Positions 1 to 42,037 of a stretch of DNA of 64,000 nt are shown here, in pieces. Position numbers and translations under genes: made by a program. The stretch comes from Tubulanus polymorphus (taxonomy: Eukaryota > Animalia > Nemertea). Position 1 is the stretch's first letter, and each line of letters starts with the position of its first letter. Location of the stretch: positions 4,426,231-4,490,230 of the forward strand of contig NC_134033.1 in NCBI RefSeq assembly GCF_964204645.1, written 5' to 3'. The notes under the pieces were generated by a model. The model did not search any database and was not told where the DNA came from. It worked only from the letters and a program-made list of their open reading frames with translations.

Positions 1-3000
1 TGTGATGGTTATGTTCTACAGGATGAAGATCGACAGATCAATATGACGTCACACTGTCTGGTGATCACACCTGAAAATCGACGCTTTCGCTTGAAAAATA
101 TTCACATATTATCAGAACACGAATATCAAATTGACCGATGTTTTCTCAAGATGTCATTGTCATGTGATCAGTTTCTTAGTTTGAGTAATCAGTGTCTTGA
201 TAACAGTCTCGTAGTAAACACAATAGATTTCACAGCTGAAGGGTTTTGGTTCTGGCAGTATCAACTAATAGTAAAACTACGTCGTGAATGTCTAGGAGTG
301 AAAAAAGCAGCTAGTATTCGAGGTTACCTTATCTTATTTGCGACTCCTGATAAATGTGGACTAGTGCAGTCACCGATGTACCCAGGTGGGGCAGGACGTA
401 CGTCAAAATCAATTGTCTATAAATTTGAAAAAACGATAGAACAAAATAGAATACAATATTACGGCATATATCAATATTACAGATTTATTCTCAAATCTAT
501 CGGATCAGTTTCATGTGAAACAAACAATTCATTTGATAATGATCCAATCATTCTAATGCAAATAATGAATTACAGCCACTTCCTAGACGGAGTCGTTAGA
601 AACCGACATGAAACTAAAATATGTCAAAATAACGCGGTTCGTGGACTCATATTTCATAGTTTAAAAGGTTGGGACCTGCGTTTTGAAGTAATTAATAGAA
701 TTCCAACGTTTCAAATACAATACACTTTACACGAGTCGTTACCGATTAAACGTTTCGATAATTTCTACTGTCAAAATGGATTTCTGGATTCCGGAATTTC
801 CTGCATCAAATTCATCAGAGATTTACGTCTGAATTGGGAGAACGCTGAAATATACTGTAGACAGAAGTACGCGGGACATCTACTCAGTATCAACTCAGAA
901 CAGGAAATGATTTCAATCAAAAGATTATTCGCTTCAGTTCTTCTCCAAATGGCGTACACATTAAAATGGCTCATAATGATGATTGGATTAAAGTGGAAGG
1001 TAAGACTAATGTATACAAATATGAATTAGAATAGAAAGAAATTTATAGAAGAAATAATATTCATTTTTTCACGAAGCAGAATGATGGATATTACACGTGG
1101 ACTGATGGTAAACCATTGAGCTACACAGAGTGGTATAAACCTGTTATTAATGAAACGATACCAGAAGTTATTCGAGGATTGATATCTCCGCTAAGAAAAC
1201 AACCGATAAATGACGTCAATATGCCGTGTACGGCGATGATACTGAATAATCCACGAGGATCAGCGAACTGGGTTCGATTCCCGTGTCAAATCGAGGAGAC
1301 GCACACGACATTCATTTGTGAATCCGAGAGAATCGACATCAAAAACAAACACAATTCAACGATAAACGATGCGAAAAATTCAACAAATACAGACTTAAAT
1401 AAAACCACTGATCAATTGATTCCCGATGTTACTTTAATTACTTCAAACTGTCCAAGGGGTTGGGTAACTATTTCTGGACAATGCTATCAAATACTAACCG
1501 ACTGGAAAAACAATCGAGGTTTGAATATTCGGAGTGCTAGAGAAATGTGTCACAGTATCCACACCGAAATAGTAAGAATCACCTCAAATACAAAAAGCGA
1601 TATCAAAAATGTTCTTAGCAAATTTCATTATCGACATCAATATGGCGCTATTCTGACAAAGGACAGCGACGGATTTAAAGTTATCAAACCACTTGTGACC
1701 AGAAATGAAATTACATATGTTCAATCAGTTAAATGGTTGTTGAACCCTTTCGATAGTACAATAGATAAAGTGCATTCCGTGTTGTGTACCTATAATGTAA
1801 CTGTTGAAGAGTTAGCTTCTATGAGCGCTTGTAAATCGTGGCAGTTTGAATGTAACGATCAAAGATGTATCAGCGACCATCGCGTTTGTGATACCAGACA
1901 CGACTGTCAACACGGTGAAGATGAACTCAATTGTACGGATATCAATTTACGCAGTCAGTTCCGCTGTAACGATGGACAGGTTATATCGATTAGCGGTTTC
2001 TGTGACTTTATGAGAGATTGCGTCGATGGCTCGGATGAGAACTCGTGCTATCATCCGCAGTGCTTATATACGCAATATCGCTGTTCCAATCAACAATGTA
2101 TCGATAGTTATAAACGATGTGACGGACTAGCCAATTGTAAAGACGGTTCCGATGAGATCGGATGCACTGCTGCACTTTGTCAGGGGTTCTCGTGCGCGGA
2201 CGGTGAATGTATTAGTTCTCAGTTGTATCGGGATGGCGTCGTGGATTGTAGCGGAAGTCTCGAAGAAGACGAATTGGTCACTAATGTGACAATGAATCCC
2301 GAGGTTTACTGTAATAATGACAATCACTGTACGACTCGTTTCACAGATCTGTGTAAGGAATCGGATGAACAAAGATGTTCGTTCAATTCTCCTCGCTGTT
2401 ATTCCCGACACGAAAGGTGTATTTTAGAAAGGATGCCGATTGGTTTCCCAGTATGTAGAAATCTTGAACATATACTCGCGTGTAATGACTTCGAATGCGC
2501 GGCTGGTACTGTAAAATGTCCGGCATCTTACTGTATACCAATCAGACACGTTTGTGACGGTCGATCCGATTGTCCAAATTCAGAAGATGAACGAAACTGC
2601 GAGACTTGGTCGTGTCCGGGAATGTTTAAATGTGGTCAGGAAAATCGATGTATTCCGCAATCTGAAGTTTGCGACGGTGTCGTAAATTGCAAACATAACT
2701 CAGATGACGAGTCATACTGTAAGGTCACGTGTCCTGAACGTTGTAATTGCCGGGGTCATTTCATCGATTGTGAAAACGCTCTTTTATCAGATATTAATGC
2801 TCGTTTTATAGAATCAACTCGGGTTTTGATTTTGTCGAATAACCGAGTCGTATTTAACGAGTCGACGTTCAACTCTTTCATTTATCTTCGTTTTCTCGAT
2901 ATTTCGGGCAATAATTTGTCTTACATCGTTCCAAACGCGTTTTCTAATTTAAACAATCTATACACATTAGACCTTACTCACAACCGCATAACATCATTAT

Positions 3001-4334
3001 CTGCTAATACATTCGCAGGTTTGATCAGTTTAAAACAACTATTTCTTATCGGAAATACGCTGCAACATTTAGAAGACGGTTGTTTCCGAGGTCTGACGTC
3101 ACTTACTGTTCTCGATCTTCACGGTCTTTCTATATCGGTTCTCGGTGAAAATGTATTTAAAGGTTTATCCGCATTACAGTCGTTAAATATCAGCAGTAAC
3201 AGAATACATTATATTTCCAGTTATGCTTTTTACGGATTGGTTGGACTTGAAATTCTAGATCTAGTCAAAAATGCCGAAGTGATATTTGTAAAACGAAACG
3301 TTCTTGGCGATCTTACATCATTGAAATACATCGCTTCGGATGCTTACAAATTTTGCTGCATGGCACCGAATGTTGACCGATGTCTTCCCGAAGCTGATCA
3401 ATTTTCAACCTGTTCTGACCTGATGGGTAACGCTGTACTGAGAGCCATCATCTGGATGATCGCATCTTTCAGTTTTCTCGCTAACAGTATCGTTATCTTA
3501 TTTCGCGTCCAAGCTTTGCGGATGGAATCCACCCGAACACGTAACACATCTTCAGATATCTACATCATTAATATTGCCGGTTGTGATTTTCTGATGTCGG
3601 TCTATTTGTTTGTGATCGCAGGAGCTGACCACGCGATCAAAGGCGTTTATTATCTGAATTCTGAAGCTTGGACAGATAGCTCATTATGTCGTCTCGCCGG
3701 GGTTATTGTCACCGTTTCCTGCGAAGGTTCATTGACTTTTCTCTTAATTCTAACGCGTCAGAGATATTCAAACATCGTCAACCCGTTTTCTAGAAGTCCG
3801 ATTATAACTCCGAATTACGTTATCGGTATTTGCTGCATCTGTTGGCTCGTTATAAGCACAGTTTCTATTCTACCGCTGTCATCGTCGTCTTACTTCGGAG
3901 ACAATTTTTACGGTACAACCGGAGTTTGTTTGCCTATGAATTTATTGACGATCGACGTCAATGGCTGGCAATATTCATTCGCTATTTTTGCCTTGTTTAA
4001 TGCGGCCATATTGGCTACCATAATGATGACGTACGCTCAGATGTATAGACTCGTATCTGGAAGTAGGTCGGGCTCGGGTAGAGCCGATCCTACCGAACTG
4101 GTTTTAGCACGAAGGAGTTTAGTAATCAATCTTTGTAATTTATTTTGCTGGCTACCGATAATAATCGTTCAGTTTTGCGCCGTATTTTCGGTCGAGATAC
4201 CGAACCAGGTTGCCGCTTGGCTGGCCGTTCTATTTTTACCGATCAACTCGTCTCTGAATCCGCTTCTTTATACCATACTGACGATCGATATGAAATCAAT
4301 TAGAACGAGATATAAACGTCAACAAAAGAACTAG
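1..4334 (+). CDS. GRL101-like LGR-family GPCR, copy A, 5' part outside the window; exons <1..999 and 1080..4334
   Basis: Phase-0 intron 1000..1079 (AAG|GTAAGA ... GCAG|AAT) joins ORF 43..1029 to ORF 1116..4334 and rebuilds a C-type lectin domain (WENAEIYC...MIGLKWK-NDGYYTWTDGKPLSYTEW...TFICE). This is followed by a second lectin-like module, LDLa repeats (CDGLANCKDGSDE type), LRRNT (CPERCNC), LRRs, the hinge (FCCMAP...CSDLM) and a class A 7TM (QRY, CWLP, NPLLY). Confidence 0.92.
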
Positions 4335-4849
4335 ATTAATAACACTTCAGTAGCAATAAAGGAGCTTTTAAACGAATCGTTTTAGTGTTCTCGGTCGCAC
4401 ACCAAACTCTAGTAATGAATCTAAAGAACAAAGGACATTAACGATGACCTTTGGGCCCATGGTCCATTCAGTTTTTTTATCACAACTTTCTTCGTAGCTA
4501 TTAGATTAATTGTAGATTGTTTGTTAAATGCAATGTTATTTACTTTAGGTGCGGATTTAACGGGCTCGGCGAGCCCTTTACTGGCCAGTGCAATTGAAAT
4601 AAACGATTACATAGATGACGACTTTTTAATTTATGAATGTATTCACTGATGTAGTGAAAGCGTGTGTGTGTGAGAGTGATAGGTTTCATTTTTCTTTTAG
4701 GGCGGCACGGCTCCGATAGATCCTTGTGATCTCTTCGTGTAGCCCACATTTTCTTGTTACATTTTGTCACTGTATATTATGCGATATCAATAATGTAATA
4801 ATGTAACAACAAAAATAAATACCATACTACTTTACTAAATATGCCACCG

Positions 4850-6390: not shown

Positions 6391-10031
<3,641 letters not shown>

Positions 10032-11560: not shown

Positions 11561-12171
11561 ATATGCGCGTCTATATTGAATTCAACGCGTGTTAAGAATT
11601 AATCCTATGCCGGTTAAATTTCAAATCGAAAGGTATTCATTGAATTCAGAGATCGAGGACAATAACCAGACACAATATGAACTGAGTTTGTCATGATGCG
11701 GTGCAAGGGACGCGAGAACCACTGGCTAGGTAATACCATACAGACCCTGTTAATATTTTAACTTCAGAAACCTAACTAATATATGAAGTAGATATAATAT
11801 CAGATATTCTACACGTCCTCGTTAAAATGATATTTCTATACAGTAAATTAAATCCTTTCAAAATTGAATTAACAGAAAAATCACTTTGCAATACAATCTG
11901 TTATTTACATTTCCATTGTCTATAACTCGAATTGTCACTGAAATCAAACACACATCATAGAACTATTTGGAATTGATCAAATAAAATGAATTAAGATGAT
12001 ATCATCATAGGAAATATGCAATACATTCAACAAATCAAATGTCCATTGTCTGTAACTTGTTAGAACTGTCTTAGCACCAGCAACAGCAGTAGTAGTAATA
12101 GTAGCCGAGCAGGAAATACTGTTATTTGTATTTATGAATTCAAGTCATCAAGATGATAAATAGAGGCTACT

Positions 12172-12337
12172 TTAACTTTTCTCATGATTCTAACTCGTCA
12201 GAGATATTCAAATATCGTCAACCCGTTTTCTAGAAGTCCAATTATAACTCCAAAATGCGTTATCGGTATTTGCTGCATTTGTTGGCTCGTTATAAGCACA
12301 GTTTCTATTCTACCGCTGTCATCGTCGTCTTACTTGG
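12172..12337 (+). pseudogene. Isolated fragment of the GRL101-like 7TM region (TM3-TM4)
   Basis: Near-identical to about 3735-3897 and 41070-41232 (ctaactcgtcagagatattcaaatatcgtcaacccgttttctagaagtcc...tcgtcgtcttactt). Confidence 0.9.
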
Positions 12338-12878
12338 ATTGAGTTGTTTCCTCAGAAAGTCTGCAGAGAAAAAGTCCTTACCCGCCACAATCAGATATCC
12401 ATGCGCTTCGCTTTGCTTCAACTCAGTTATCATATTGACTGTAGAGTGTGAATTGTCAAAACAGATGTTGACGAAGTGTTATAGAGACGCAGAATATATA
12501 AGTTAATAAAGAAAATATTATCGAATATTGTCAAATCTGGTTCGGATATCAAAACGCAGTTCGGAAGCGACAGTAAATATTTTTAGCGAAATAATTGCGC
12601 ATGATTATAAACACGATATATTGAAACACGTCTAAATTTAGAAACCGCGGTAATTACAGCGAAACCGAAAACAGATGGAAGTTTCACAAAATACGATACT
12701 GGTGCCAGTTTGATTTGGTCTTTACAAAATAATTGGACACTGGATCAATTCGTCAACATCTGCCATTGGCAAATTCGTTGTAACTTCGTTATAACTGCAG
12801 CTATTCTTTTGAGAAATGTCGTGCGAACTTGGAAATAGTTAGAAATGTGTTTGTTTCGAAGCGTGAATTCTGCTCAAT

Positions 12879-15800
12879 ATGCAGCGAATGAAAGCGTTGT
12901 TCGTAGTTTTACTGATCGCTCGCGGAGACTGTATATTTACGCGGGCTGATCGCGCAAACTCTGTCGAGGAAGCCGCGTCTGTTACAGTCAGTTCATCTTG
13001 TAAGAAGACTCAATACTCCGTCGATTCTACGTCCGGTTACATCGTTTCACCGAACTATCCCTCGTTAGTGCACGGTGTTGAATGTCGTTGGTTCGTCGAC
13101 AGCTCTTTACCGGGAAGTTTTCTCGTTCAAGTTTACTACGACATCGAGCCGTCGATATTCTGTAACGAGAACTGCCCTCTCATCGGTAAATCCGACAACA
13201 AACTCTGCGCTACCAGTAGAAAACCACTTGAAATCGGCAGTAATGATTTGATTTCGTTGTTGTTTAGGAGTAACGTCGATGGAGCGCGAGGTAGTCGGGT
13301 TCATATCATATATCGTTTTCTAGAACAGAGTCGCTTGAAAATCGAATATAAATGCATTATTTATTAACGGTGGAGTAAAAGAATTACCAACTCAAACAGG
13401 TTATAAATTCACGATTTCTACCTCTCGGTGTATATTGTTGTTAGAATGGATCGGGAAGCCAGACGGGTTTGCAATGAATTTAACGTTTATACAGTTAGAT
13501 TTCAGATTAAAACCAGGAGAGTATCCAATGAAAACTCGTCCTCAAATTTACGACGGATGGAACAGCACCAGTGAACCTATAGCTCTTATACTAGAACAAA
13601 CCGGACATCCACCTTCGTCGTGTTATACTAAAACTTATAAAGCACGTATTGAATTCATTTCAACTAGATCTTGGTTTCAGTCGCAGTTACTCATGCGAGT
13701 TTACAAAATATAATTTTGGAACATCTCTAACCCGTTAATTCAAATCTATAATAAATCAGGACTGCTCACTACAATTGATGGAATACCACATATAGTAACT
13801 AAGTCTAAACACTTATACTGCTGGTCTATCACAGTCGATGTTCTGCAGTACGTCATCTTCAACTGGACACGTGATCTCGTCTCGTCACCAGGTGTCGTTG
13901 GTGTATATAAACAGGAAGGGTTACGTATTGTGAGAACTGATATTTTACTCAGTTTTAACCATCTTATATCTCTGAGTGTAAAATCAGACGGATTTCTCGT
14001 GATTCTGTGCGTTTTAACGACATCGCATTTTTTTAAATCAAATTTGAAAATAGAATTCGAAGTGAAATCAATGAAAATATCAGACGACCACGTCAACAAG
14101 CCAAGGATATCGGTAAATTAAAAACAATGATTTGTAAATTAGGTTCGTGTAATAGAATCATTGTAATAATCTATGATTTTGATGGCGATTTTGACGAGTG
14201 AAACTTTGCCGAGAAACTTGGAATGACAACGTTATGTGTGACCCAAAGCACATGTTGTTTACGCGGAGTAATTATGATGATTAGTGGAAGAATTTAAATT
14301 ATTTTGGATTACAACTAGAACTATTATCGATATTTTGCTGTTTGTTAGTGGTTTGAAATTGTCGTATTGTAAACATTCAATACTGTAATCAATTCTCTTA
14401 TATTTCAGCATTCAATCACAAAGTTTGTGATTGAATGCTGAAATATAAGAACTCAATATCAGCTAATCGATTGTTCCCAAGATCAAAGACTACATTTTAT
14501 CGTGTAACTACATTACAACTAAACTGGAAAGTGAACATCTATGAAGAACAGTTGAAACTAACAGCGCTATCAGAAAACTGTGATCGAGCTGGTTTTTATA
14601 ATTTTGATGGTATAATTTCACAGCTAGACGCTATGGTCCGTATTGTCCTGGTTCATACTACGGTCGATCTGTCGTCAGCCTGATTACATCAGGTGGACCG
14701 GTTACTGTAGTAGCATACGCTTATTACTATAACAATCGGTTAACTGTTGGTTGTCCTAGCAGGTCATCTCTTGAATTTGCTCCTACTGATTGTGATGGTT
14801 ATGTTCTACAAGAAGAAGAACGTCAGATCAATATGACGTCACACTGTCTCGTGATTACACCTGAAAATCGACGCCATCGCTTGAAAAATATTCACATATT
14901 ATCAGAACACGAATATCAAATTGACCGATGTTTTCTCAAGATGACATTATTATGTGATCAGTTTCTGAGTTTGAGTAATCAGTTTCTTAATAACAGTCTT
15001 GTATTAAACTTCACAGTTAATGAGCGGTTCCTGAACTTCGCTGAAAAGCTGAAACACTGAAAAGCTGAAACGCTGAAATAAAAACGCTGAAATTTCAGGG
15101 AATTTCCGAAAAACGCCGAAATTTCAGGGAATTCCCGAAAAACGCTGAAATCGTGCTAGGTACCGACAATACACGTTTTGAAATGTTTTCCGGGCCGGTG
15201 TCCGCTGACGAGTCCTGAACCGTGTTTTATGCTCTACCTTCGGTTACAGAGACATGCCTTATGGTCGTCGTCATGACCGACTTGATCGATTGCGGATTGC
15301 GTGGATTGTTAGATGTGTTTTTTGCCATAGTTTTATGTGCATATACCGGTACGATCTAACAATGAAGTTATCACTTCATTTGAATAAATTCTTAATCACA
15401 GTAATATTAATTCACAATATTTTTTCTTATGTTTGGTGATTTCTTGCAACGTATCATTGCCAAGTCTCATACAAGTAGTAGCTGAATGAAAGTACAGTTA
15501 GGCTGAACCTGATAACCCAAATTAAGTGCTAGCATAGAACTAATGATTATTTTGATTCTATTTTCGGTGTCATTGAAATTCGTTAATAAAGGTTTTAACC
15601 GTCATAGTATACTGTACTTGGCATTGCTACAATTGGGTGCCATATTTCTACAATTTCTACAAGGAGGAAGGAATCTTTAAGTGTCTTTGTTCCCGGGTAG
15701 GGTACGGGGTAAAACCTGGTTTACTTTCTCTTTCGACTTGCCGGAGACTACTATCTGCAATGTATTGCATGCTTTGATGTGTCTGGCCTATAGGAGTCGA

Positions 15801-18103: not shown

Positions 18104-19201
18104 TTATTTTGAATAACACAGATAACTGATGAGTAATACTTGTTTTGCTTTTTTCCTGAAGCTGTCGTTCGTTGCGCAATAAACGAAGAAATTTACTGAT
18201 GAATCAAAAGCACTGAGCAGAATTCCAACTTTCCTCAGGACCATTAGTTCATCTCCGGATAAACTGTGGCGTATTCCTAACTTGATTCTGAAGAAATGTA
18301 ACAATCGCTGTACAGATGCCGGAATTTCGAACACAAAGTACAATAACACAATCAAGAGAACCATTTTTAATATTTTCAATTCAGCGGATGTGTTTTTACT
18401 TTTCTCACTGATCGCCGCTGAGTTAAATTGTTTCTTCCCATCTATTTTTCTAAATATCATGACTCCGAACAAAGTTAGATTTAACATTATTAGAATAATG
18501 AAAGGTAAGAGAACCGTCATGAAGATGTAGGTAATGAATGTGAAGTAATACCCATAATCATACCGATAATGAAAAGGTGTTCGAGTTGTTTGGCCACCAA
18601 AGGCTCCCAATGTAAATACACCTGGAACACAAGGATCGGTCGTCCTTCCGGGTAAACGAAGTGGAAAATAATGCGGCCAATGACAAACTGCTGAGAAAAA
18701 CGCGTTGAACAATGATAAGAATATTATTTGTTTTTTGTTCCAGAATCTTCTAAAATACAGCGGACTCGCGACGACCAAAAGTCTCTCAAAACTTACTATC
18801 ACAACCGCCCAGTTTCTAGCAGTTTGAAATGTAAAGAACAGCGGCATCGCCCATGTAATGATTTCGTGTCCAAAATACCAATCATCATAGTGCATAAGCA
18901 GTTTAGTTTTAGTGGTTTTGCTGAAATCGATGATAATAAGACGAAATGGGTAAAGTACGAATACTGACAACAGAAATAGTATTTCAAACCAGGCAAGAAT
19001 TATAATAGTTTGATAAGTGGTACGACCGATCTTTCTGAATACTACAATAGAAACAGAGTTCAGTATCACTCCCAGAACTGAAACCAACGAATATCCGAAA
19101 CGGTACAGATTGACACTGAACACATGGTTCCATCGTGTAGGTGGATGTACACAGTGAGGAGACTCAGCCATCGTCGATGTGAATTGTGATGTAAAATTCA
19201 T
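18104..19201 (-). CDS. Single-exon class A GPCR, FMRFamide/peptide-receptor-like (365 aa)
   Basis: Seven hydrophobic segments; GVILN (TM1), ERLLVVASP (TM3), LLPF (TM5), EIPAS (TM6), DSSVNFFVY (TM7) and helix 8 SFRKK. Confidence 0.92.
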   Translation of the reverse strand: MNFTSQFTSTMAESPHCVHPPTRWNHVFSVNLYRFGYSLVSVLGVILNSVSIVVFRKIGRTTYQTIIILAWFEILFLLSVFVLYPFRLIIIDFSKTTKTKLLMHYDDWYFGHEIITWAMPLFFTFQTARNWAVVIVSFERLLVVASPLYFRRFWNKKQIIFLSLFNAFFSAVCHWPHYFPLRLPGRTTDPCVPGVFTLGAFGGQTTRTPFHYRYDYGYYFTFITYIFMTVLLPFIILIMLNLTLFGVMIFRKIDGKKQFNSAAISEKSKNTSAELKILKMVLLIVLLYFVFEIPASVQRLLHFFRIKLGIRHSLSGDELMVLRKVGILLSAFDSSVNFFVYCATNDSFRKKAKQVLLISYLCYSK

Positions 19202-24117: not shown

Positions 24118-27100
24118 TTATTCGCTCGCTGTTTTGGAGGCTTTAGAGGTTTGACCCAGTTTGAATTCCGCTCGACACATATCGAACACTCGTTTGTTGA
24201 CGATAAAAGCCAAGAAAACCAGACAACCTTGAGACGAGTTCAACAAATTGAAGAAATACCAGAGATAATCGTTATTTACGAACGACGCTACGAACCCGAC
24301 CACCCACGTGACCCCAGTCACTACAGCCATTCGGTAGAAAATGAATGTGGTCGTTCTCATCTGTTTGGCGTTAGATGAAGAAGTGGACATCGCGGAAAAT
24401 GACCGGTGAATGCGGTAAACTGTAGCTACGAATAGAATCATACTGACCAGATCGATAATACCGATCGGTAGAACGAACGCCATCAATAGGGAGAAACTGG
24501 AACTAAACCAACAAGTAACGGGGCTTCCGTAAACCGCACCGGAGTACTGAGTGGTATCGGTGTTGTGTAGGACGATACAGGGTCCGACAATGAGGAATGG
24601 AGAAAACCAAACTGATAGTAGATAGTACAGTAACGTCTTAGGAGAATCGATCAGTTTACGAATAGTGGAAAATGTAATGAACATGTGAACAGAAACAGCG
24701 GCCATAGACGCGAAAACAACCATCCAAATATAGTGTTTAACAGCGGCCATCGACACGCATAGTAATCGATTATCAACGCCGATCAGGCTGGAAATATGAA
24801 GAGTTTGAGCCACGGCGAGAGTTATACAGAGATTGACGATGAGTTTACCGGGTAGAGTTCGCAGATCGGGAATATTCAAATAGATTACGACCGTTATCAC
24901 GAGACTGACGACGGACAGACAGCTACAGGTGAAGGTAATCAGGAAATCGTGATCGGAAAATAACGAACTGACCGTTATTTTAAATTTTGAATTGTTTCGT
25001 CGTCTGCAAACCATGGCTCCTGTACTAGAATACACTCGCACGCAGTCATTGATTTTAGTGGAACATTTACTCGATTTTAATATCTGCATTTTTCCGTCGT
25101 CTCTGGTAATTTGAAAAATTCTGTAATATTTAAAAGACGGGTTGGATTGGGCTAGAAATGAGTTACTTCCGGTTTGGGTCATATTGTTTTCTACGTCTGC
25201 CTCTGTATCGATGACGTCACAGCGAGTATTCTTAGTCAAACTCGTAGCCGACAACTCGTAACCGGAAATGGTCACCAGACTGCCATCATTGCCGAATTGA
25301 CACGTGATCATCGCCTCATATTCGCTCAAGATTGATTCCATAGTGACGTCACCGAGAAACTCTTCGTGATTGGTAAGCGTGAAGTCGCGTCTGTACAATG
25401 ACGATTCATTGCTTAAAGATGATAAACTTCCTATTTCTGAAATCTTTGATTTATGGACATCGCCGCAGACTTTCACTTTGAAATACATCAATTCAAACCC
25501 GAAGTTTTTCATAACAAATCGCTGAGTTTCGTTAAAAGTAATAAAGAAAGATAAATACACGCGTACGGATATTATAGGCCATTCGTTCTCAACAAGCCGA
25601 CAGACAGCGTTGTCTTCGTCGGTACCCAGGAGTCGGTATCCCCGTAAACAGCCGTATCCGCGACATCTACGCGTCTCCTGGTCAAATATTTCGTTTGTTT
25701 CCGAGCAAAGAAAGTCTTTCGGCGCCCACGAGATGACGGGCATTCCCGCAGTTCGAAATTCTACGCCGTTCGCGACACTGAAATCGAGTAAGATGTTCAA
25801 ACCGAATGTTTTTTGGCCGGTTAGATCATAGTTACAAACTAAGGTCGATTCGTTTAAAACGCTGTCACTCAGTTCACATTTCATACAGTAATAATTACGG
25901 TATGTTTTCACCCGTCCACCGACTACAGCTGATATCGGGTTAAAAACCCGTCTGCATTTAGACCTTAAGTCTTGATCTGCTGACTCGTTGCAGTGTGACG
26001 TCACGGGTAGGTTACTGCGCATGCACGGCTGTAAAACCATGCGAACTTTCCTGTGATGCGCGTAAGATAAACGACAATCTTCGGGCAGCCGAACCTTCGC
26101 GGTATCGTCGCTTAAAGACGCGTTTTGCACGCTCGTGATGACGTCATCGATTCGTGTGGTTTTAGTGCACTGCAGGACGAGACTAGCCGGTTCGTATTGA
26201 GTGTCGTTGAACCCGTGACACATCGCGCAATACATATTCTTAAAGGGAAGCCAGTCGTCGATGTAGACGGGAATCGTCGTAGCTAGATTACTGGACGGCG
26301 ATTCGCAATAGCGACGCATGTCTGAATTCAAGTCGAAATCACTCGGGCACCGACTGATCGCTATAAAACCTTTTGACTGATACGTCTCGATTCCGATTCC
26401 GTATATACAGTCGGTCCATTGAATTTGTTGTATCGTTTTGTTTCGCCTCAATTCGTCCACGTCGCTTCTCATGACGCACTTTCCAACCAGGTCACAACAG
26501 TTGTTAAACAGTCCGCAAGTACATAAATTCGCCAAACAACCCGTGACTGGACAAACTCGAACTAAATCTCCATCTTCATCTATTTGCTCCGATGCCACCT
26601 TGTAATCTCCGATCAATTGGTTTTTTATGTCGCCTCTTCCGGGAATTTTTCGACCAGGAATCCTACCTGCGTTACCCGTTATCCCAGTTCCGGGAATCTG
26701 TCTACTCGGCATTCCAGATTCGGGGAATCGTTGGGTCGCGATGAAATAATCTGAAATTATTACAGCAATTAGTTTTTTTTTCGATAAACCCTTCTTCCAT
26801 TTTTAGAACTTCCATTTTGCATTAGAAAATCTTAACCCCAGTAATCAAAAAGGCCTTAACGTACGTATAACCGTACGGTATAGCTTAGAATTCGATTAAC
26901 ATCGTTTACGTTTTTTTTACGTTTCGTTTACGTACATTTAGAACGGAAATCGATCGGCGTTTTGGAAAGAGTTTAAACGCGTACCGTACATCGTTGTATC
27001 GGTTTCAAACGCGTTCAAATCGCGTACTGTACAACGCGTTTCAATTGGAACGATAAACGACAACGCGACCCGTTAATTTTAATCTGTACCGTACGTTTTT

Positions 27101-28087: not shown

Positions 28088-28250
28088 ATCTGGTTGGCAC
28101 TATTCATACACTATTTTCAATTGTCTTTTAATGCGGCCACATAAGATGTATAGATGCGCTCAGATTCAGATGTATAGACTCGTATCTGGGAGTATGTCGG
28201 GCTCGGGTAGAGCCGATCCTACCGAACTGGTTTTAGCTCGAAGGAGTTTC
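28088..28250 (+). pseudogene. Isolated, scrambled fragment of the GRL101-like 7TM (TM5-ICL3)
   Basis: Encodes QMYRLVSGSMSGSGRADPTELVLARRS; the DNA matches about 4040-4120. Confidence 0.88.
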
Positions 28251-30859: not shown

Positions 30860-32281
30860 ATGATGCAAAATGGACGTAATTCGGCTGAGGACCTAAAACT
30901 GCCGCTTGTGACGCCATCTGGTGATGAAACCGCGAACGGAAGCCGCGTAACGCGTTTCCTATCTTCGACGGCTCTAGTCAAAGTCATCGCTTTCAACTCC
31001 GTATTTCTAGGCGCGTTAGTGACTTCGGTAGTCATCCCGATTCTACCGGCGCTACTCGTCGACTTCGAAAAACAAGCGGCTCTGGCAAGCGGTGTCAACT
31101 CGACGACCGGAAGAGTGGCCGAATTTGAATACAACGGCCAATACCATCCGTGCGCGCATCGAAACGGAAAAACCGTCGAAAAAATAAGCTTTATATTTCT
31201 AGCGAAACCTTTCAGCGAAATGCTGACTAATCTAATCACCGGAAGAGTCGTCGATTCGTTCGGGTTTCGAATCCCATTATTACTCGGTTCGGCGTTGAGC
31301 ATCGCGTCCGTAATCGGGTTCACGTATGTCGACACGATCTTGCTGATGACCTTGATGCGGATAATAGAGGGCGTCGGCACCAGTTTGAGCGTCGTATCGT
31401 CGCTGGCTTTGGTCACGAGCGTTTTTAAAATGGACGACGAACGAACGAAAGCGATCAGTATCGGTTACATGGGTTGGTCAGCAGGTGTCGCTCTAGGTTA
31501 CCCGTTCGGTGCAGTGACGTACTATTTCTTCGGGCGCGACGTGCCGTTTTTGATGCTAGGGGCGCTGTCGATTATAGACGGTATTTTACGATTGGTCGTT
31601 CGCCCGCCTGTCAAGAAACCGGTGGCAGCCTCGACCAAATCTGCGATGGAATCGAAACAGAATCTGACGGAATTAATACGAAATTCGCACGTGATTCTGA
31701 TAGTGATTCTATGCTTCGCGATGTACACGATATGTGGCGCGTATTTGACCCTTGCGCCCGATTGGATGCTGCATGATTTGTGCGCAACCATGTGGCAGGT
31801 TGGCGTAATACTATTGATCGGCGCAGTTTTTCAAACGGCCATGAAATATTTCGTCGGTTGGTACGGAATTCGGGTCGGCCGTTGGGTGTGCGCCGTCGCG
31901 GGGTACCTCATACTCGTCGTAGGTCTATCAACCTATACGCTCCCGCCATATATATGGGCCCTGCTGGGTCCTGATCTCGCGATACGGATCGGCTACGCGG
32001 CCAATGCGTGTTCGCTGACGTCACTACTGGCTCTGGTTTGCGAACGTAATTTCCCAAGCCAACAAGGCTCGGCGTTCGGTATTTATAACGCTTTTACGAA
32101 TCTAGGTTTCGTCGTAGGGCCACTGATTAATATAGGCCTTTTACAGGTGGTAACTACGACTTGGTGTCTGAGGATGTTCGCCGGTATGTCACTGCTGTCG
32201 GCTTGTTTGGCCGTATTTCTCAAATTCGCGGAGGACGGCAACAATGATTCGGACGTCGAAGAATTAGTGGAGCCTGAATGA
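30860..32281 (+). CDS. MFS transporter, SLC18 (VMAT/VAChT)-like, single coding exon (473 aa)
   Basis: About 12 TM segments; TSVVIPILP (TM1), FLAKP (TM2), GRVVDSFGFRIP (MFS motif A), DDERTKAISI, GFVVGP. An acceptor TTCTATTTCAG lies directly before the ATG, implying an upstream 5' exon. Confidence 0.9.
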   Translation: MMQNGRNSAEDLKLPLVTPSGDETANGSRVTRFLSSTALVKVIAFNSVFLGALVTSVVIPILPALLVDFEKQAALASGVNSTTGRVAEFEYNGQYHPCAHRNGKTVEKISFIFLAKPFSEMLTNLITGRVVDSFGFRIPLLLGSALSIASVIGFTYVDTILLMTLMRIIEGVGTSLSVVSSLALVTSVFKMDDERTKAISIGYMGWSAGVALGYPFGAVTYYFFGRDVPFLMLGALSIIDGILRLVVRPPVKKPVAASTKSAMESKQNLTELIRNSHVILIVILCFAMYTICGAYLTLAPDWMLHDLCATMWQVGVILLIGAVFQTAMKYFVGWYGIRVGRWVCAVAGYLILVVGLSTYTLPPYIWALLGPDLAIRIGYAANACSLTSLLALVCERNFPSQQGSAFGIYNAFTNLGFVVGPLINIGLLQVVTTTWCLRMFAGMSLLSACLAVFLKFAEDGNNDSDVEELVEPE

Positions 32282-34574
32282 GGACCCGGTCTGTTTACTC
32301 TCTAAGTCAGAACACCAGTGCCTTAAACGTAGGTAGGGACTACACTCGGTTATGTAGTTTTGGGTCCCGGCTTAGCATTCTTCTATTTTCACTCAGGACC
32401 TAGTTGCGCAGTCTTGAAAAGTCCAAAAGTAGTTTTGAATATTAAGACTGGACATATGATTTACCTATAGAATTTCAATTATAGTTAAAGGCAGTTGTTA
32501 GATTGGCTATTGAAGTGAGATCGTCATAAAGCATTTTTAAATCTAAGTCAGAACTGTGCAACAGACCCCAGGAATCGAATTGTCAAATCGAAAAAAGTGG
32601 GAAACTGGGGCCCAGGATTTAACTCACGAATTTGTTCTCACAATTGTGGAACTGGGCACACAACTGTAGCGCCGGGTCGATCTTGTTCAGGAAACAATCT
32701 CACGACATTCACGCATTTCCTTTCGGTGCTAAATACCTCGACTCACTTTCAAAACTTCAAGCAGGCTAATTTCTAAAACTATAAAATTTCATTCTGTTTC
32801 TTACTAAATATGCGGCTGAAATAGAATAATACGAACTGCGAATTGTAATGAACAATGATGTTCTTTATATAACAAATAATCTCCAAGTTTTTGCTACGTA
32901 TGTTTTTCAAATAAGAACAAAATGATTTCTGAAGCAAAAAATACATTAAATTAGGGCAAGGTCAGATGTTACCGTAGATATGTACTTCCAATGTCCAAAA
33001 GGACTGGTCCAACTAAATTGTCAGCGACCCTTTTTCTGTTACGACTAGAGACGATCGACGAATGTGGCGAAAGGATTAATACATCGTTTCTCCTAATCGG
33101 CCGGGTCATTTTGTAAACTGCAACCAAATTTGTCATCATTTCTAACTGTCGGGTCCGTTATTTTTTAGCTGAAAAATTATTCAAAAGGTAATGTAGGCCT
33201 ACCGGGTAATTAGGCAGCCGACCGGGTCATGCTTAGCAGAAATCTGCAATCATCCGCCACTCCTGATATTCCCCTCGCGACGGAGACTTCCATCGGAGAC
33301 TTCCGGGTTCACACGTGTCTAGACAAATATACTTGAAAATAATTTTCGAAATCCGAGTCTCAAAATCATTGAAGAATCATACGATATATGAGTAAGATAT
33401 TTCTATAAGACACGAAGAAAAAAGTTTCCGCCGGTTGTTAGACTCTAAACAAACAGTTTCATAAATAAAACGATTGCTTTTCATTGGAATAAATACAAGT
33501 AAAAAGTCCCTTTTGCAATGAAATAAATGGTTGAGTTATACGTCGGGAACGCCCCCTAGCGGGATTGCTGGTGACAAGGAATCGTTACGCGCTCAACATT
33601 TTATAACACGAGAAATGTAAAATATTTGATGACGTCACTTGTTATAGAAATCTTTAAAACCGATAGAATATAAAAGGAACTGGTTTATTTATTGTAGACC
33701 TGATTTTTTTTTTTTAATTTTCAACTCTACCCCCAGTCTCCACTAGTTACATGTATCATTCCACGCACGTGCGGGTAATTACTGTCAAACATCACGTGAT
33801 CTAACAGATAACACCTGTTCACTGACCGCAACTACATTATTGACGATAAATATGAAAATATGCATTTTCAAATTTTGGACTGTTTTCGGAAAATGATACG
33901 GCGCAATTTTCAAATCTCGATCTTGTACGAGCTTAAAACCATAGATAGAGAAACAACAAGATTTGAATATGTGGTTTAAAGTTATCGGCATCTGTGACAG
34001 TCCGTTAGAACATTTTTTTTCGATGATCCACTTTGATTCTGTTTTGATAAAAGCGTTATCTTGATTTTCGTGTTTATTCAAAAAGATCCCACCGCACAAT
34101 CAGATATCCATGCGCTTCACTTAGCTTCAACTCAGTTATTATATTGACTGAAGAGTGAATTGTCGAAACAGATATTGACGAAGTGTTTTACAGAGACGCA
34201 GAATATTTTGCAGTAACAGCAGAAAATATTACTGGATATTATTAAAACCTGAACGCTGTTCGGGAGCGACAGTAAATATATTTTTAGCAAAATAATTGCA
34301 CATGATTATAAACAAGATATATTGAAACACGTCTAAATTTAGAAACTGCGGTAATTACAGCGAAACCGAGAACATGAGAAAGTTTCACAAATACGAGACT
34401 GGCGCCAGTTTGATGGGAGATCTTAAAAAAAAAATAATTAGACTCTGATCCATTCGTCAACATTTCATATTAGCAAATTCGTCATTACATTGCAGCTACT
34501 CTTTAAAGAAATGTCGTGAAAACTTTGGAAATAGTTAGAAATGTGTTTGTTTTGAAGCGTGAATTGTGTTCAAT

Positions 34575-37500
34575 ATGCAGCGAATGAAAGCGTTGTTCGT
34601 AGTTTTACTGATCGCTTGCGGAGACTGTATATTTACGCGGGCTGATCGCACAAACTCTGTCGAGGAAGCCGCGTCTGTTACAGTCAGTTCATCTTGTAAC
34701 AACACTCAATACTCCGTCGATTCTACGTCTGGTTACATCATTTCACCGAACTATCCGTCGTTAGTGCGCGGTGTTGAATGTCGTTGGTTCGTCAACAGCT
34801 CTTTACCGGGAAGTTTTCTCGTTCAAGTTTACTACGACATCGAGCCGTCGATATTCTGTAACGAAAACTATCTTCTCGTCGGTGAGTCCGACAACAAACT
34901 CTGCGCTACCGGAAGAAAACAACTAGATATCCGCAGTAACGGGTTGATTTCGTTGTTGTTTAGGAGTAACGTCGATGGAGCGCGAGGTAGTCGGGTTTAT
35001 ATCATATATCGTTTTGAAGAACAGAGTCGCTTGAAAATTGTACACACATGCTACAAACATGCAGTAAAAGAATTACCAACTCAAACAGGGTATGAATTCA
35101 TGATTTCTATCCGTCGATGTAAATTGTTGTTAGAATGGATCGGGATGCCAGACGGGTTTGCAATGAATTTAACGTTTATACATATTGATTTCAAATTAAG
35201 ACCAGGTGAGGATCCAATGAAAACTCGTCCTCAAATTTACGACAGATGGAACAGCACCAGTGATCCTATAGCTCTTATACGAGAACAAACCGGACATCCA
35301 CCTTCATCGTTTTATACTAAAACTAATAAAGCACGTATTGAGATCATTTCAAGTAGATCTCGGTTTAATTCGCAGTTACTCGTGCAAGTTTACAAAGTAT
35401 CAGATTGGAACATCTCTAACCCGTTAATTCAAGTCTATGATAAATCAGCACTGCTCACTACAATTGATGGAATACCACATATAGTAACTCAGTCTAAACA
35501 CTTATACTGCTGGTCTATCACAGTTGATGTTCTGCAGTACGTCGTCTTCAACTGGACACGTGATCTCGTCTCGTCACCAGGTGTCGTTGGTGTATATAAA
35601 CAGGAAGGGTTACGTATTGTGAGAACTGATATTTTACTCAGTTTGAACCATCTTAAAACTCTGAGTGTAAAATCAGACGGATTTCTCGCGATTCTGTGCG
35701 TTTTAATGACATCGGATTTTTTAAGATCGAACTTGAAAATAGAATTTGAAGAGAAATCTTTGACAATATCAGATATTATCGTCAACAAGCCAAGGATATG
35801 GGTACGTTCATTACAACCAGTTGTACTAATGCTTTGTATGATATAATTCTATGATTTTGAATATCATAATGTTGAATTTGACCAGTGAAATCTGAGATAA
35901 CTACGTTATGTGCTCCAACTTTTTCACATAATCCATGAGATAACCGGCAGATGAATACCATAGTAACAATTAACTCTTAATTGTCACTCTGTCAACTATC
36001 CACTTTCAGGGGCCGGTTTCACAAAGCGTAATAAACCCTTAATTATGATTGAATTACTAATCATGATTAAATTATCATGATTTAATCAAGTTAGGTGTTT
36101 CACAAAACGTAATTAACTTTAATTATAATTAAGTTAACTACAAAATTTAATCATCATTAGTTTATTATCAAAAACAAAAAGCTGCAGATATTATTCATGG
36201 AATTTGGTGTTTATTAATTGACGACGGCAATCCCTACACTTATTCAGTTTTTCAGATTGTTTGGCTCAAATAATTAGGATTTTTTGCCTTTTGTAAAAAA
36301 GGCATGTCAATACTCTAAATTCTATTGATTGTTTTCAAACGTCCTATGTCTTTTTGTCAGCACGACCACCACATACTTAGAAGTATTGAATTAATTGATT
36401 TTTTCCATACATATGATAGATTTCTGTCAGTAGAGTACATATCTATGGAGTTAGTGTTAAAAAGTGCTAATCACTGCTCGGAAATAAAAACCCCATTTAC
36501 GTACGAGGATTTTATTTTGCTGACTGGAGGTGAGTTTCTATTTAAAAACTTTTGAGACATCTTGCTAAGTTTTTCCACTGGTTCCTGAGACCTTTCAGAG
36601 CAATCTTTAACTCCCAAAGGAGTGAATTTCTCTTTTCCTCTAAACAAGGAAGGTTGTTGATGCTTGGAGAGCAAATGGCTGTCTAAAGTTCCGCCATTTT
36701 GATACAGTTAAATTGTAATTAAGTTGCCTAATTGTGTAATTAGTTAATTTTGTAATTAAACCCTTTCGTGAAACCGAATTTTAATCGTTATTAACTAATC
36801 ATGATTAAGGAAATTTAATCATGATTTAGGTCCTAATTATAATTGAAGTTAATTATGCTTTGTGAAACCGGCCCCTGGCATTTAGCCTTAGAAATACATG
36901 TTACTGCAGACTAATTATAATAATTAATCGGAGAATTGCAACACCTCAACTATTATCGATATTTTTTTCCATTTTAGGTAAGTTTAAAATTCTCGTTTTG
37001 TAAAAATGCAATGTTGTAATCGATTTTCTAATATTTCAGAATTATGTGAGGATAAAATCAATACCAGCTAATCTATTGTTCCCGAGATCAAAGAATACAT
37101 TTTATCGTGTAACTACATTACAACTAAACTGGAAAGTGAACATCTATGAAGACGGGTTGAAACTAACAGCGCTATCAGAAAACTGTGATCGAGCTGGTTT
37201 TTATATATTTGATGGTAGTAATTTCACAGCTAGACGCTATGGTCCGTATTGTCCTGGTACATTCTACGGTCGATCTGTCGTCAGCCTGATTACATCAGGT
37301 GGACCGGTTACTGTAGTAGCATACGCTTATTACTATAACAATCAGTTAACAGTTGGTAGCTCATCTCTTGAATTTGCTCCTATTGATTGTGACGGTTATG
37401 TTCTAGAGGAAGAACAACGTCAGATCAATATGACGTCACACTGTCTCGTGATTACACCTGAAAATCGACGCCTTCGCTTGAAAAATATTCACATATTATC

Positions 37501-40500
37501 AGAACACGAATATCAAATTGAGCGATGTTTTCTCAAGATGCCATTGTCATGTGATCAGTTTCTGAGTTTGAGGAATCAGTTTCTTAATAACAGTCTCGTA
37601 TTAAACACTGTCGATTTCGCAAGTGATGGGTTTGGATTCATGAGGTATGCACAATCGATTCAACTGCGTCGTAAATGTCTGGGAGTCAAAAAAGCTGCAA
37701 GTTTAAACGCTATCCCTAACCTTGAGATAGCTAAAGATAAATGTGGACTGGTGCAATCACCGCACTACCCGGGTACGGCAGGACGTATCGTAGCATCTAT
37801 ATCATATAAATTTGAAAACTCGATACAACTAAATACATTTCATTATTACTATTTTATTATCAAATTTATTGGATCAGTTTCATGCGGAACGAACAATGGA
37901 AGAGCAAATGATCCAATAATATCGAGGCAGTTTATACATGACGATTCATTCCGAGATGGAAAACTTTCTATTCCAACCCAACATGAAACTAAAATATGTG
38001 AAAATAACGCGGTTCGTGGACTTATATTTTATAGTTTAACAGATAATACTCTGCATTTTGAAGTAAATAATAAAATCCCAACCTTTCAAATACAATACAC
38101 TTTACACGAGTCGTTACCGATTAAACATTTCGATGATTTCTACTGTAAACAAGGATTTCTGGACTCCGGAATTTCTTGCATCAAATTCATCAGAGATGAA
38201 CGTCTGAATTGGGAGAACGCTGAAATATACTGTAGACAGAAGTACGCGGGACATTTACTCAGTATCAACTCAGAACAGGAAATGATTTCAATCAAAAGAT
38301 TATTCGCTACAGAACTTCTCCGAATGGCGTACTCATTAAAAGCGCTCATAATGATGATTGGATTAAAATGGCAGGTAAGACTAATGTTTACAAATATGAA
38401 TTAAAATAGTACGATTTTTAAAGAAGAAATAGTTATTTTCTTTTTTCACAAAACAGAATGATGGTTATTACGCGTGGACTGATGGTAAACCATTGAGCTA
38501 CACAGAGTGGTATAAACCTGTTATTAATGAAACGATCCCGGAAGTTATTCGAGGATTGATATCTCCGCTAAGAAAACAACCGATAGATGACGTCAATATG
38601 CCGTGTACAGCGATGATACTGAATAATCCTCGAGGATCAGCGAACTGGGTTCGATTCCCGTGTCAAATCGAGGAGACGCACACGACATTCATTTGTGAAA
38701 CAGAAAGAATCGATCTTAATGCATCTTCACAAAACGATACAACTGAAATAAAGTGGAAAAACATTGAACGATTTAACTCCACGTGTCTAAGAGGATGGAT
38801 TCGTATAGAAGCGCATTGCTATCAAATACTTACAGCCTGGCAAACGCTCCAATCTGAAAGTTTAACAATCGAAACAGCCAGAGAAATGTGTCTTACAATC
38901 GGCGGAGACATAGGTATAATAACATCTAATATTGAAATACAGTATTTGATAAATGTTTTCCACTTTCAGCATCAATATGGCGCTATACTGACTAATCATA
39001 CAAGCGGCAGAATTGTGGCAATACAACCAGTTGTAATTAGAGATTGGATAACATATTTTCAAACAGTGAAATGGTCAGTGACTGCCTTTGATAATGTGAC
39101 AGATGAAGCGCATTCCGTTCTATGTTCCTATGATGTAACTGGTGAGTTGGTTTCTGTAAGCGGTTGTCAATCGTGGCAGTTTGAATGTAACGATCAAAGA
39201 TGTATCAGCGACCATCGCGTATGTGATACCACACACGACTGTCAACACGGTGAAGATGAACTCGATTGTACGGATATCAATTTACACAGTCAGTTCCTCT
39301 GTAACGATGGACAGGTTATATCGATTAGCGGTTTCTGTGACTTTATGAGAGATTGCGTCGATGGCTCGGATGAGAACTCGTGCCATCATCCACCGTGCAT
39401 ATCTACGCAATATCGCTGTTCCAATCACCAATGTATCGATAGTTATAAACGATGTGACGGACTAGCAAACTGTAAAGACGGTTCCGATGAGATCGGATGC
39501 ACTGCCGAACTTTGTCAGGGGTTCTCGTGCGCGGACGGTGAATGTATTAGTTCTCAGTTGTATCGGGATGGTATCGTGGATTGTAGCGGAAGTCTCGAAG
39601 AAGACGAATTGGTCACTAATATGACAGTGAATCCCGAGGTTTACTGTAATAATGACAATCACTGTACGAGTCGTTTCACAGATCTGTGTAAGGAATCGGA
39701 TGAACAAAGATGTTCGTTCAATTCTCCGCGCTGTTATTCCCGACAAGAAAGGTGTATTTTAGAAAGGATGCCGATTGGTTTCCCGGTATGTAGAAATCTT
39801 GAACATATACTCGCGTGTAATGACTTCAAATGCGCGGCTGGTACTGTAAAATGTCCGGCATCTTACTGTATACCGATCAGACACGTTTGTGACGGTCGAT
39901 CCGATTGTCCTAATTCAGAAGATGAACGAAACTGCGAGACTTGGTCGTGTCCGGGAATGTTTAAATGTGGCCAGGAAAATCGATGTATTCCGCAATTTGA
40001 AGTTTGCGACGGTGTCGTAAATTGTAAACATAACTCGGATGACGAGTCATACTGTAAGGTCACGTGTCCTGAACGTTGTAATTGCCGGGGTCATTTCATC
40101 GATTGTGAAAACGCTCTTTTATCAGATATTACTGGATATATCATTGAATCAACCCGGGTTTTTATTTTGTCGAATAACCGAATCGTATTTAACGAGTCGA
40201 CGTTCAACTCTTTCATTTATCTTCGTTTTCTCGATATTTCGGGCAATAATTTGTCTTACATCGTTCCCAACGCGTTTTCTAATCTAAACAATCTATACAC
40301 ATTAGACCTTGCTCACAACCGCATAACTTCATTATCTGCTAATACATTCGCAGGTTTGATCGGTTTAAAAGAACTATTTCTTTTCGGCAATCCGCTGCAA
40401 CACTTAAAAGTCGGTAGTTTCCGAGGTCTGACATCACTTCCTGCCCTCGATCTTCACGGACTTTCTATATCGGTTCTCGGTGAAAACGTATTTAAAGGTT

Positions 40501-41684
40501 TATCCGCATTACAGTCGTTAAATATCAGCAGTAACAAAATTCATCACATTTCGAGCTTTGCTTTTTCTGGATTAGTTGGACTTGAAATTCTTGACCTCGT
40601 CAACAATTTTGGAGTAATATTCGTAGAAAGAAACGTTCTTGGCGATCTTACATCATTGAAATACCTCGCTTCGGATGCTTCCAAATTTTGCTGCATGGCA
40701 CCGAATGTTGACCGATGTCTTCCCGAAGCTGATCAATTTTCAACCTGCTCTGACCTGATGGGTAACACTGTACTGAGGGCAATCATCTGGATGATCGCAT
40801 CTTTCAGTTTTCTCGCCAACAGTATCGTTATTTTATTTCGATTTCAAGCTTTGCGGATGGAATTCTATGGAACACGTAACAAGTCTTCAGATATCCTCAT
40901 CATAAATATTGCCGGTTGTGATTTTCTGATGTCGGTCTATTTGTATTTGATCGCAGGAGCTGACCACGCGTTTCAAGGCGTTTATTATCTGAATTCTGAA
41001 ACCTGGACGGATAGCTCACTATGCCGTCTCGCCGGGGTTATTGTCACCGTTTCGTGCGAAGGTTCCTTGACTTTTCTCTTAATTCTAACACGTCAGAGAT
41101 ATTCAAATATCGTCAACCCGTTTTCTAGAAGTCCGATTATAACTCCGAAATACGTTATCGGTATTTGCTGCATTTGTTGGCTCGTTATAAGCACAGTTTC
41201 TATTCTACCACTGTCATCGTCGTCTTACTTCGGAGACAATTTTTACGGTACAACCGGAGTTTGTTTGCCTATGAATTTACTGACGATCGACGTCAATGGC
41301 TGGCACTATTCTTTCACTATTTTTGCCTTGTTTAATACGGCCATATTGGCTACGATAATGATGACGTACGCTCAGATGTATAGACTAGTATCTGGAAGTA
41401 GGTCGGGCTCGGGAAGAGCCGATCCTACCGAACTGGTTTTAGCTCGAAGGAGTTTAGTAATCAATCTTTGTAATCTATTCTGCTGGCTACCGATAATAAT
41501 CGTTCAGTTTTGCGCCGTATTTTCGGTCGAGATACCGAACCAGGTGGCTGCTTGGCTGACCGTTCTATTTTTACCGATCAACTCGTCTCTGAATCCGCTT
41601 CTTTATACAATACTAACTATCGATATGAAATCTATTCGTGAACGCAATAAACGACGACTAGGATTGACGACATCCGGTAAATAA
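34575..41684 (+). CDS. GRL101-like LGR-family GPCR, copy B, complete; exons 34575..35801, 37040..38374, 38457..41684 (1929 aa)
   Basis: Signal peptide MQRMKALFVVLLIACG. Two phase-0 GT-AG introns (35802..37039, 38375..38456) join three ORFs in frame. Domains: CUB (GYIISPNYPS...CRW), further CUB-like segments (DGSNFTARRYGPYCPG), C-type lectin, lectin-like module, LDLa repeats, LRR, 7TM. Confidence 0.93.
36007..36877. mobile_element. PIF/Harbinger-like non-autonomous element in intron 1 of GRL101 copy B
   Basis: TIR CAGGGGCCGGTTTCACAAAGC / GCTTTGTGAAACCGGCCCCTG with AT-rich subterminal palindromes. It is absent from the equivalent 296-bp intron of copy C. Confidence 0.8.
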
Positions 41685-42037
41685 ACAATATAAAGCTGCG
41701 TCTATGTTCAATGTTAAATTTCTCACGTACGAATTCGATTCGTTGAAACCGTTTCCTTATTCCGAAAACTTTCGAAAGCGATTCAAATTTCTCGAATCAA
41801 TTAATGTTCTTTTGGAATAAAAGAGATTTCATGCAGTGCGTATTTAAAGTAACTCAAGTCGATTTGATTTTTAAAAATCCGGTGTAGTTACTGTTTATTC
41901 AACTAAAAAAATATCCCCTACAGATGGCCTGATATCTCTACCTTTAGTGGTTTTCACATAACATGAGAATAATTTGACATCAAAAATAGTAGTTTCAATT
42001 GAAAATGAACCAGATATTATTTCTACTTTTTTATAAT

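Follow-up and report, generated by a model that had tools for sequence, protein, structure and literature searches.

A B-type lectin-like module in an A-type receptor gene: a mosaic member of the GRL101-like receptor family of the ribbon worm Tubulanus polymorphus

The window analysed here, a stretch of 64,000 nucleotides from the ribbon worm Tubulanus polymorphus, contains two paralogous receptor genes, copies A and B, that are about 96% identical in the flanks of positions 1322-1830 of A and strongly diverged between them. This raises the question of how a sharply bounded block of divergence came to lie inside one exon of two otherwise near-identical genes. Global alignment of A (1-4400) with B (37388-41740) gave 92-100% identity per 60-bp window on either side of the block and only 42-68% between A 1313-1840 and B 38690-39175. 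The identity ends just after ...TTCATTTGTGAA (A 1321, B 38696) and returns at ...TCGTGGCAGTTTGAATG (A about 1830, B about 39166). A sequence-only reading of this DNA had described both boundaries as exon-internal, and its coordinates proved correct, each gene having the block inside a single long exon; the skeleton that it described as kept across the block is present in full (C.RGW, CYQILT.W, AREMC, HQYGAILT and HSVLC). As suggested by our comparison with other members of the family, copy B is very probably an A-type gene that received a single tract from a B-type gene in place of its own sequence, by ectopic gene conversion or an equivalent double crossover.

The receptor genes and their second lectin-like module

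The exons of the receptor genes were searched individually against the references rather than as one joined spliced protein. Exon 3 of copy A encodes, in this order, the end of lectin domain 1, the second lectin-like module, LDLa repeats, leucine-rich repeats (LRRs), a rhodopsin-type 7TM region and the stop codon (Table 1). Pfam models matched it as Ldl_recept_a (E 2.6e-35) in six stretches N-terminal of the LRRs, as LRR_8 (E 1.8e-31; LRR_4 and LRR_1 also match) in three stretches directly before the 7TM, and as 7tm_1 (E 2.4e-23) at amino acids 818-1064, the C-terminal rhodopsin-type 7TM. The best named protein match was an uncharacterised protein of T. polymorphus itself (LOC141911221, 71% identity), and the other named matches were snail and clam LDLa-LRR-7TM proteins (30%) and relaxin receptor 1 (27%, E 1.6e-69), the best named vertebrate relative. 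By its predicted domains the receptor is a GPCR of the GRL101-like, type C LGR (relaxin-receptor-like) class. The exon 2 product of copy A comprises a CUB-like region and the N-terminal half of the first C-type-lectin-like domain, the latter including a weak Lectin_C match in Pfam at amino acids 277-303. The introns ahead of exon 3 in A and B are 80-81 nt long and of the GT..AG kind. Copy B is complete, all three of its exons lying inside the window. The third gene, 'copy C', had been taken for a paralogue comparable with A and B and turned out to be a truncated pseudogene that lacks the module.

Table 1. Features of the receptor genes in the window (positions 1 to 64,000)
Feature	Position	Strand	Remarks
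Copy A, exon 2	1..999	+	Open frame 1, GT donor at 1000; window begins within the exon
Copy A, exon-2 variable patch	223..690	+	CUB-like by the motif CG..SP.YP
Copy A, intron 2	1000..1079	+	80 nt, GT..AG
Copy A, exon 3	1080..4334	+	Single long exon; open frame, Pfam matches
Upstream homology box U2	1147..1322	+	5' breakpoint interval of the proposed swap
Module core, A-type version in copy A	1323..1788	+	Minimal swapped tract
Downstream homology box D1	1789..2054	+	Module end and first LDLa repeat; 3' breakpoint interval
'Copy C'	12870..15009	+	Truncated, frameshifted pseudogene: exon 1 and part of exon 2, no module; tblastn with B exon proteins
Copy B, exon 1	34566..35846	+	In open frame; signal-peptide-like start MFNMQRMKALFVVLL...
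Copy B, exon 2	37046..38375	+	In open frame
Copy B, exon-2 variable patch	37610..38059	+	
Copy B, exon 3	38457..41684	+	Intact; A-type backbone and B-type module
B-type tract within copy B	38700..39123	+	Equivalent to A 1323-1788; up to 38524-39389 including the boxes

Between the receptor copies the window holds four single-exon frames, at 18107-19201 (-), 59758-60711 (+), 24121-26712 (-) and 30860-32278 (+), whose products are two rhodopsin-type GPCRs, of which one matches nematode chemoreceptor models as well, an 864-amino-acid 7TM protein of the secretin/adhesion type and an MFS transporter. Stray 7TM-coding fragments of the receptor (12163-12336, 28089-28250 and 50779-51054; 63-91% amino acid identity to B) are debris of former copies. 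Self-comparison of the window also revealed tandem and inverted repeat arrays at 8385-8810, 44682-45039 and 58305-58670, with no relation to the receptor genes.

The module core consists of an N-glycosylated linker followed by a putative degenerate C-type-lectin-like domain. A profile built from 18 modules had as its top PDB matches only C-type lectin-like domains (IgY receptor, PLA2R, mannose receptor; E 3e-6 to 1e-3). The match to this receptor family spans the N-terminal half of the module only (CxxGW, the CY strand and helix alpha-1), and the sugar/calcium motifs WIGL, EPN/QPD and WND are not visible in the 18-sequence alignment. Pfam Lectin_C reached E 0.12 at best, in one of the 18 members. 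An AlphaFold model of the module from 18 paralogues was poor (pLDDT 37.6), with an order of secondary-structure elements like that of a C-type lectin-like domain, and a word search with the module, to which length limits apply, found no relative. The module is likely a degenerate lectin-like fold, and 'lectin' here names this probable fold and not a demonstrated binding of sugar.

Six-frame searches of the genome (268 Mb, 77 contigs) with two module queries gave 358 and 332 candidate loci, which amounts to at least 330 paralogues. The genes of this family have three exons, stand in tandem arrays and encode giant GRL101-like receptors with CUB-like, lectin-like, LDLa, LRR and 7TM parts. An A-type module (84-89% amino acid identity to the module of A) is present in about 55 genes on contig C9, and a B-type module (82-92% to that of B) in about 25 genes on the same contig. 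The two subfamilies occupy interleaved arrays on the same chromosome and differ along the whole gene: DNA identity between the types is 64% for the module and 68-80% for the LDLa/LRR part, and ordinary B-type genes share 72-79% identity with A over the 1.5 kb that follow the module and about 76% over the rest of the gene. The hypervariability that the sequence-only reading had attributed to the module is hence not borne out; instead there are two discrete types, each 92-94% alike in DNA, with dN/dS of 0.37 and 0.63 within the types and 0.27 between A and B. Its further proposal, that gene conversion homogenises the LDLa/LRR/7TM core between genes, is not supported either, for B is itself an A-type gene and the core of true B-type genes is only as similar to the A-type core as given above.

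For comparison across the subfamilies we used 60 of the at least 330 loci, about 3.5 kb of each, at window-equivalent positions -421 to 3330, with exon 1 and the 7TM end lying outside this range. The set comprises the A-type loci L001 (copy A) to L030, the chimeras L031 (copy B) and L032, the B-type loci L033-L048, L054 and L057 (C9, 3.18-4.78 Mb), the loci L049-L053 (15.7-16.3 Mb) of a sister group of the B-type genes, B2, and five more distant copies. Stop codons were present in the sampled part of exon 3 in 12 of the 60 copies, so that about a fifth of the family looks pseudogenic. Three A-type loci of one clade (L009, L026 and L029) have a short B-like patch, KWSVTAF instead of KWLLKPF, at the 3' end of the module, which looks like a small conversion tract within the A-type module.

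Copy B as a mosaic of the two subfamilies

Copy B and L032, which lies 330 kb from it, were the only genes in which a B-type module was followed downstream by A-type sequence (94-96% identical to A); the other 26 genes with the module of B were 72-79% identical to A in the downstream region. In 100-bp windows, B tracked A-type genes everywhere outside the module (0.90-0.99 to the best A-type copy), and at window-equivalent 1310-1780 it was 0.96-0.98 identical to B-type genes and 0.53-0.75 to A-type ones. At 579 diagnostic sites, both chimeras were B-type in one contiguous block (1323-1788) and A-type elsewhere, and this clustering was highly significant in triplet tests (Fisher p 1e-84 to 1e-93). 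Diagnostic sites are absent from 1147-1322 and from 1789-2054, so that the tract is between 466 and 908 bp long.

Phylogenies of the segments were discordant for both chimeras. The suggestion made from the sequence, that recombination or gene conversion shaped the pattern and that a module on the ligand side was exchanged, is supported. The module tree has B and L032 as sisters (support 84) within the B-type genes, with the A clade at 100% support; the backbone tree places both within the A clade (100% support, stem of 0.33). The analysis shows the B-type and A-type subfamilies to be the sources of module and backbone, and also the age of the mosaic relative to the radiations of the two subfamilies. 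Placing the chimeras with the wrong type, under a constraint that held them together with half of the wrong group, cost 330 and 865 log-likelihood units (AU p 7e-30 and 6e-6). A constraint to one clade (p 0.61 and 0.08; 0.066 and 0.0005 in a rerun) is satisfied by sliding the chimeras onto the stem and is therefore the wrong test.

Synonymous divergence along the gene, estimated by the Nei-Gojobori method for the segments U (1080-1319), module (1320-1832), D1 (1833-1976) and rest (1977-3300), was strongly non-uniform, and the uniformity that the sequence-only reading had named as a result against itself was not found. Listed in the order of these segments, dS was 0.10, 1.41, 0.04 and 0.15 between A and B, 0.27, 0.097, 0.04 and 1.07 between B and the B-type genes, and 0.15, 0.14, 0.00 and 0.16 between B and L032. 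As this profile by segment indicates, the divergence of the module of B reflects a separate ancestry and not faster evolution in place. Strong diversifying selection on the ligand-binding surface of a recent duplicate, which would make the module diverge where it stands, could appeal to the raised within-type dN of the module (0.054-0.064, versus 0.011-0.033 in flanking segments) and to its within-type dN/dS (0.37-0.63, versus 0.18-0.58); we accord it next to no probability, because the module is saturated at synonymous sites between A and B against 0.04-0.15 in the flanks, at a dN/dS of 0.27, and because about 25 other genes offer a ready donor type at dS 0.097. The dS profile together with the existence of the B-type clade refutes such in-place diversification. 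No compared segment had a dN/dS above 1 in these segment-wise Nei-Gojobori estimates.

On either side of the module lies a stretch, of 176 and 266 bp respectively, that is nearly identical in about 80 genes and too long for short reads to span, and an assembler might have joined A-type and B-type reads across these stretches. The available reads and the second chimera make such an artefact extremely unlikely. In an Illumina run from another sample (X5), all 30 bins of 37900-40100 were covered at 98% identity or more with no gap, and the depth within the module of B was about 12-20, as for a single-copy sequence; these reads are 150 bp long, so that they cover the locus without linking diagnostic sites across the boxes and without bridging the junctions of B directly. 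The module of B has substitutions of its own (96% identity to the nearest B-type gene, L033, and 95-96% to L032), and the window is free of any N. Furthermore, L032 shows the same mosaic at a dS of about 0.15 from B in nearly every segment; the two differ by about 4-5% all along, so that a one-off join is not the source of the mosaic. The Logan contigs from runs X1-X3 were fragments of 60-390 nt that left most of the module uncovered; one of them skips 72 nt at 38378-38451, which differs from the GT..AG intron. At position 39143, four of seven X5 reads carry an extra GAA that restores the glutamate of the other copies (GEELAS versus GELVS in B), which represents either an allele of B or cross-mapping reads of L032.

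The contiguous block of donor-type sites, the discordant segment trees, the jump in dS and the presence of donors on the same chromosome are together the marks of a mosaic produced by ectopic gene conversion. Copy B stands tail-to-tail with a B-type array at 4.506-4.531 Mb and L032 head-to-head with another at 4.74-4.78 Mb, each array being of opposite orientation to the chimera beside it. No direct or inverted repeat was found between the two boxes. A tract from a B-type gene, no shorter than 466 bp (1323-1788) and no longer than 908 bp (1147-2054), would have replaced the A-type sequence in B through ectopic (non-allelic) gene conversion or a double crossover of equivalent effect. The exchange would have started and stopped in the two short boxes at the sides of the module, a route from one box to the other that takes the whole module across.

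The ground for this direction, with the module moving into an A-type gene, is parsimony. The identical final mosaic is predicted if B was originally a B-type gene whose two long flanks, exons 1-2 with the introns on the upstream side and the LDLa/LRR/7TM part on the downstream side, were overwritten by homogenising A-type conversion, the module being left unconverted. Such conversion of B-type genes by A-type sequence does happen in the two boxes, and B adjoins B-type arrays. We nevertheless consider this course improbable, as it calls for two long conversions, which within the sampled part cover at least 1.2 kb upstream and at least 2.2 kb downstream and both stop precisely at the boxes, where a single tract of 0.5-0.9 kb suffices otherwise, and as A-type sequence beyond the boxes was present in none of the other 26 sampled B-type genes.

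The insertion of a B-type module into an A-type gene presumably happened once. The dS between B and L032 is about uniform (0.14-0.16) and their dN/dS is 0.11-0.34, and a single event followed by duplication and maintenance under selection fits these values. The chimera has been under purifying selection since the duplication; it would have stayed intact and given rise to B and L032 by one duplication. The two are not sisters in the backbone tree, where joining them costs 26 log-likelihood units (p-AU 0.14), and two events, or later conversion of the backbone, may instead account for them. Among about 57 genes with an A-type backbone (at least 90% identity), about 51 have an A-type module and 2 a B-type module, the remaining 4 being truncated and untyped; swapping of the module is rare, since only these 2 have a foreign one.

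The shared boxes and comparable receptor families

The two boxes stand out in the comparison of the subfamilies. Identity between A-type and B-type genes is 0.976 in U2 and 0.957 in the D1 box, equal to the identity within a type, versus 0.64-0.80 elsewhere; no difference between the types is fixed in either box, and the D1 box has eight polymorphisms common to both. Between the B-type genes and B2, by comparison, identity falls to 0.898 in U2 and 0.847 in the D1 box, versus 0.91-0.94 elsewhere. The boxes contain 10 and 24 sites at which A-type and B-type genes agree and B2 differs, and not one site of the opposite pattern; outside them there are 0-7 sites of the first kind and 10-101 of the second. 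At most of these box sites the more distant copies, serving as outgroups, have the B2 state, which argues that the transfer went from A-type into B-type genes. The subfamilies are accordingly as alike in the boxes as copies within one subfamily, because the B-type genes carry A-type sequence there. All sampled B-type genes are in this respect mosaics themselves, with A-type sequence in both boxes. GC3 in the boxes is 0.42 in A-type and B-type genes versus 0.30-0.32 in B2, which fits biased conversion and A-type origin alike.

The boxes are already the most conserved stretches of the gene, and it is there that the interleaved arrays exchange sequence. Earlier or continuing conversion would have put the A-type sequence into the boxes of the B-type genes; the boxes may predate the swap, or a chimeric donor may have spread them into the B-type genes. 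A more elaborate proposal is that the boxes are kept alike as recombination substrates and that modules are shuffled as cassettes between backbones, in the germ line or somatically, with pseudogenes as donors. We regard it as very unlikely; if true, shuffling of this kind, with the 12 of 60 sampled copies that bear stop codons representing the pseudogene donors, would be comparable to pseudo-V gene conversion in the chicken or VLR assembly in lampreys.

Receptors of the same build are known from the snail Biomphalaria sudanica, where the SudRes2 cluster of 12 genes encodes GRL101-like type C LGR receptors with an N-terminal C-type lectin domain, and a role in immune recognition has been proposed for them without demonstration (PMC12297450). 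The ribbon-worm genes share with SudRes2 the architecture of lectin-like domain, LDLa, LRR and rhodopsin-type 7TM and the arrangement in tandem clusters that include truncated members (PMC12297450). In contrast to the snail system with about 18 loci, the ribbon worm has at least 330, and its genes add CUB-like N-terminal exons and the second, degenerate lectin-like module. A text search of the SudRes2 paper returned zero occurrences of either 'gene conversion' or 'recombination' (PMC12297450).

The process proposed for copy B is an ordinary one for tandem gene families, and the family itself is of a known kind. In the MHC, the lectin-like receptors of the NK complex and CEACAM, short conversion tracts likewise carry a ligand-binding segment from one paralogue to another, with breakpoints in the most conserved stretches; trees of the segments differ, and divergent segments persist in a homogenised background. 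Relative to those cases, the ribbon-worm example concerns another gene family and phylum, the swapped unit is an internal part of one exon and not an exon itself, and swaps are rare, the two subfamilies of about 80 genes together showing presumably one event. The tempting reading of a hypervariable, immune-like module gives way to a single cassette swap with known donor, recipient and breakpoints. Short stretches that are identical between subfamilies would allow a divergent module to pass between backbones, and a large family could thereby make new combinations of outer modules.

The swap might affect ligand specificity. Copy B and L032, set beside A-type genes, form a natural pair for studying binding by the second module, because little else differs in the compared part, the patch in exon 2 apart.

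The variable patch of exon 2

A divergent patch in exon 2 had also been reported from the sequence, and it is confirmed by the alignment, in which A about 200-690 is 52-77% identical to B. The patch of B has 66% amino acid identity to its best other copy genome-wide and 59% to L032, and the sequence around it is 95-97% A-type. For the patch of A, only three other copies reach 82-83% amino acid identity, all others remaining at 72% or below. It is this CUB-like patch, and not the lectin-like module, that is the truly variable part of the receptor.

Against other genes with an A-type backbone, pS in the patch was 0.27 in A and 0.34 in B, versus 0.12 and 0.11 in the rest of exon 2, and in B pN was 0.21 versus 0.04; over the two genes the ranges were pS 0.27-0.34 and pN 0.16-0.21 in the patch and pS 0.10-0.12 and pN 0.04-0.07 in the rest of the exon. 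Synonymous divergence in the patch is about three times that of its flanks. The general idea of diversified outer parts in a homogenised background is supported for this patch, with no evidence of a dN/dS above 1. With pS raised and pN/pS at about 0.6, the ratio exceeding 1 in only 2% of pairs, the patch represents old divergence in a younger or homogenised background.
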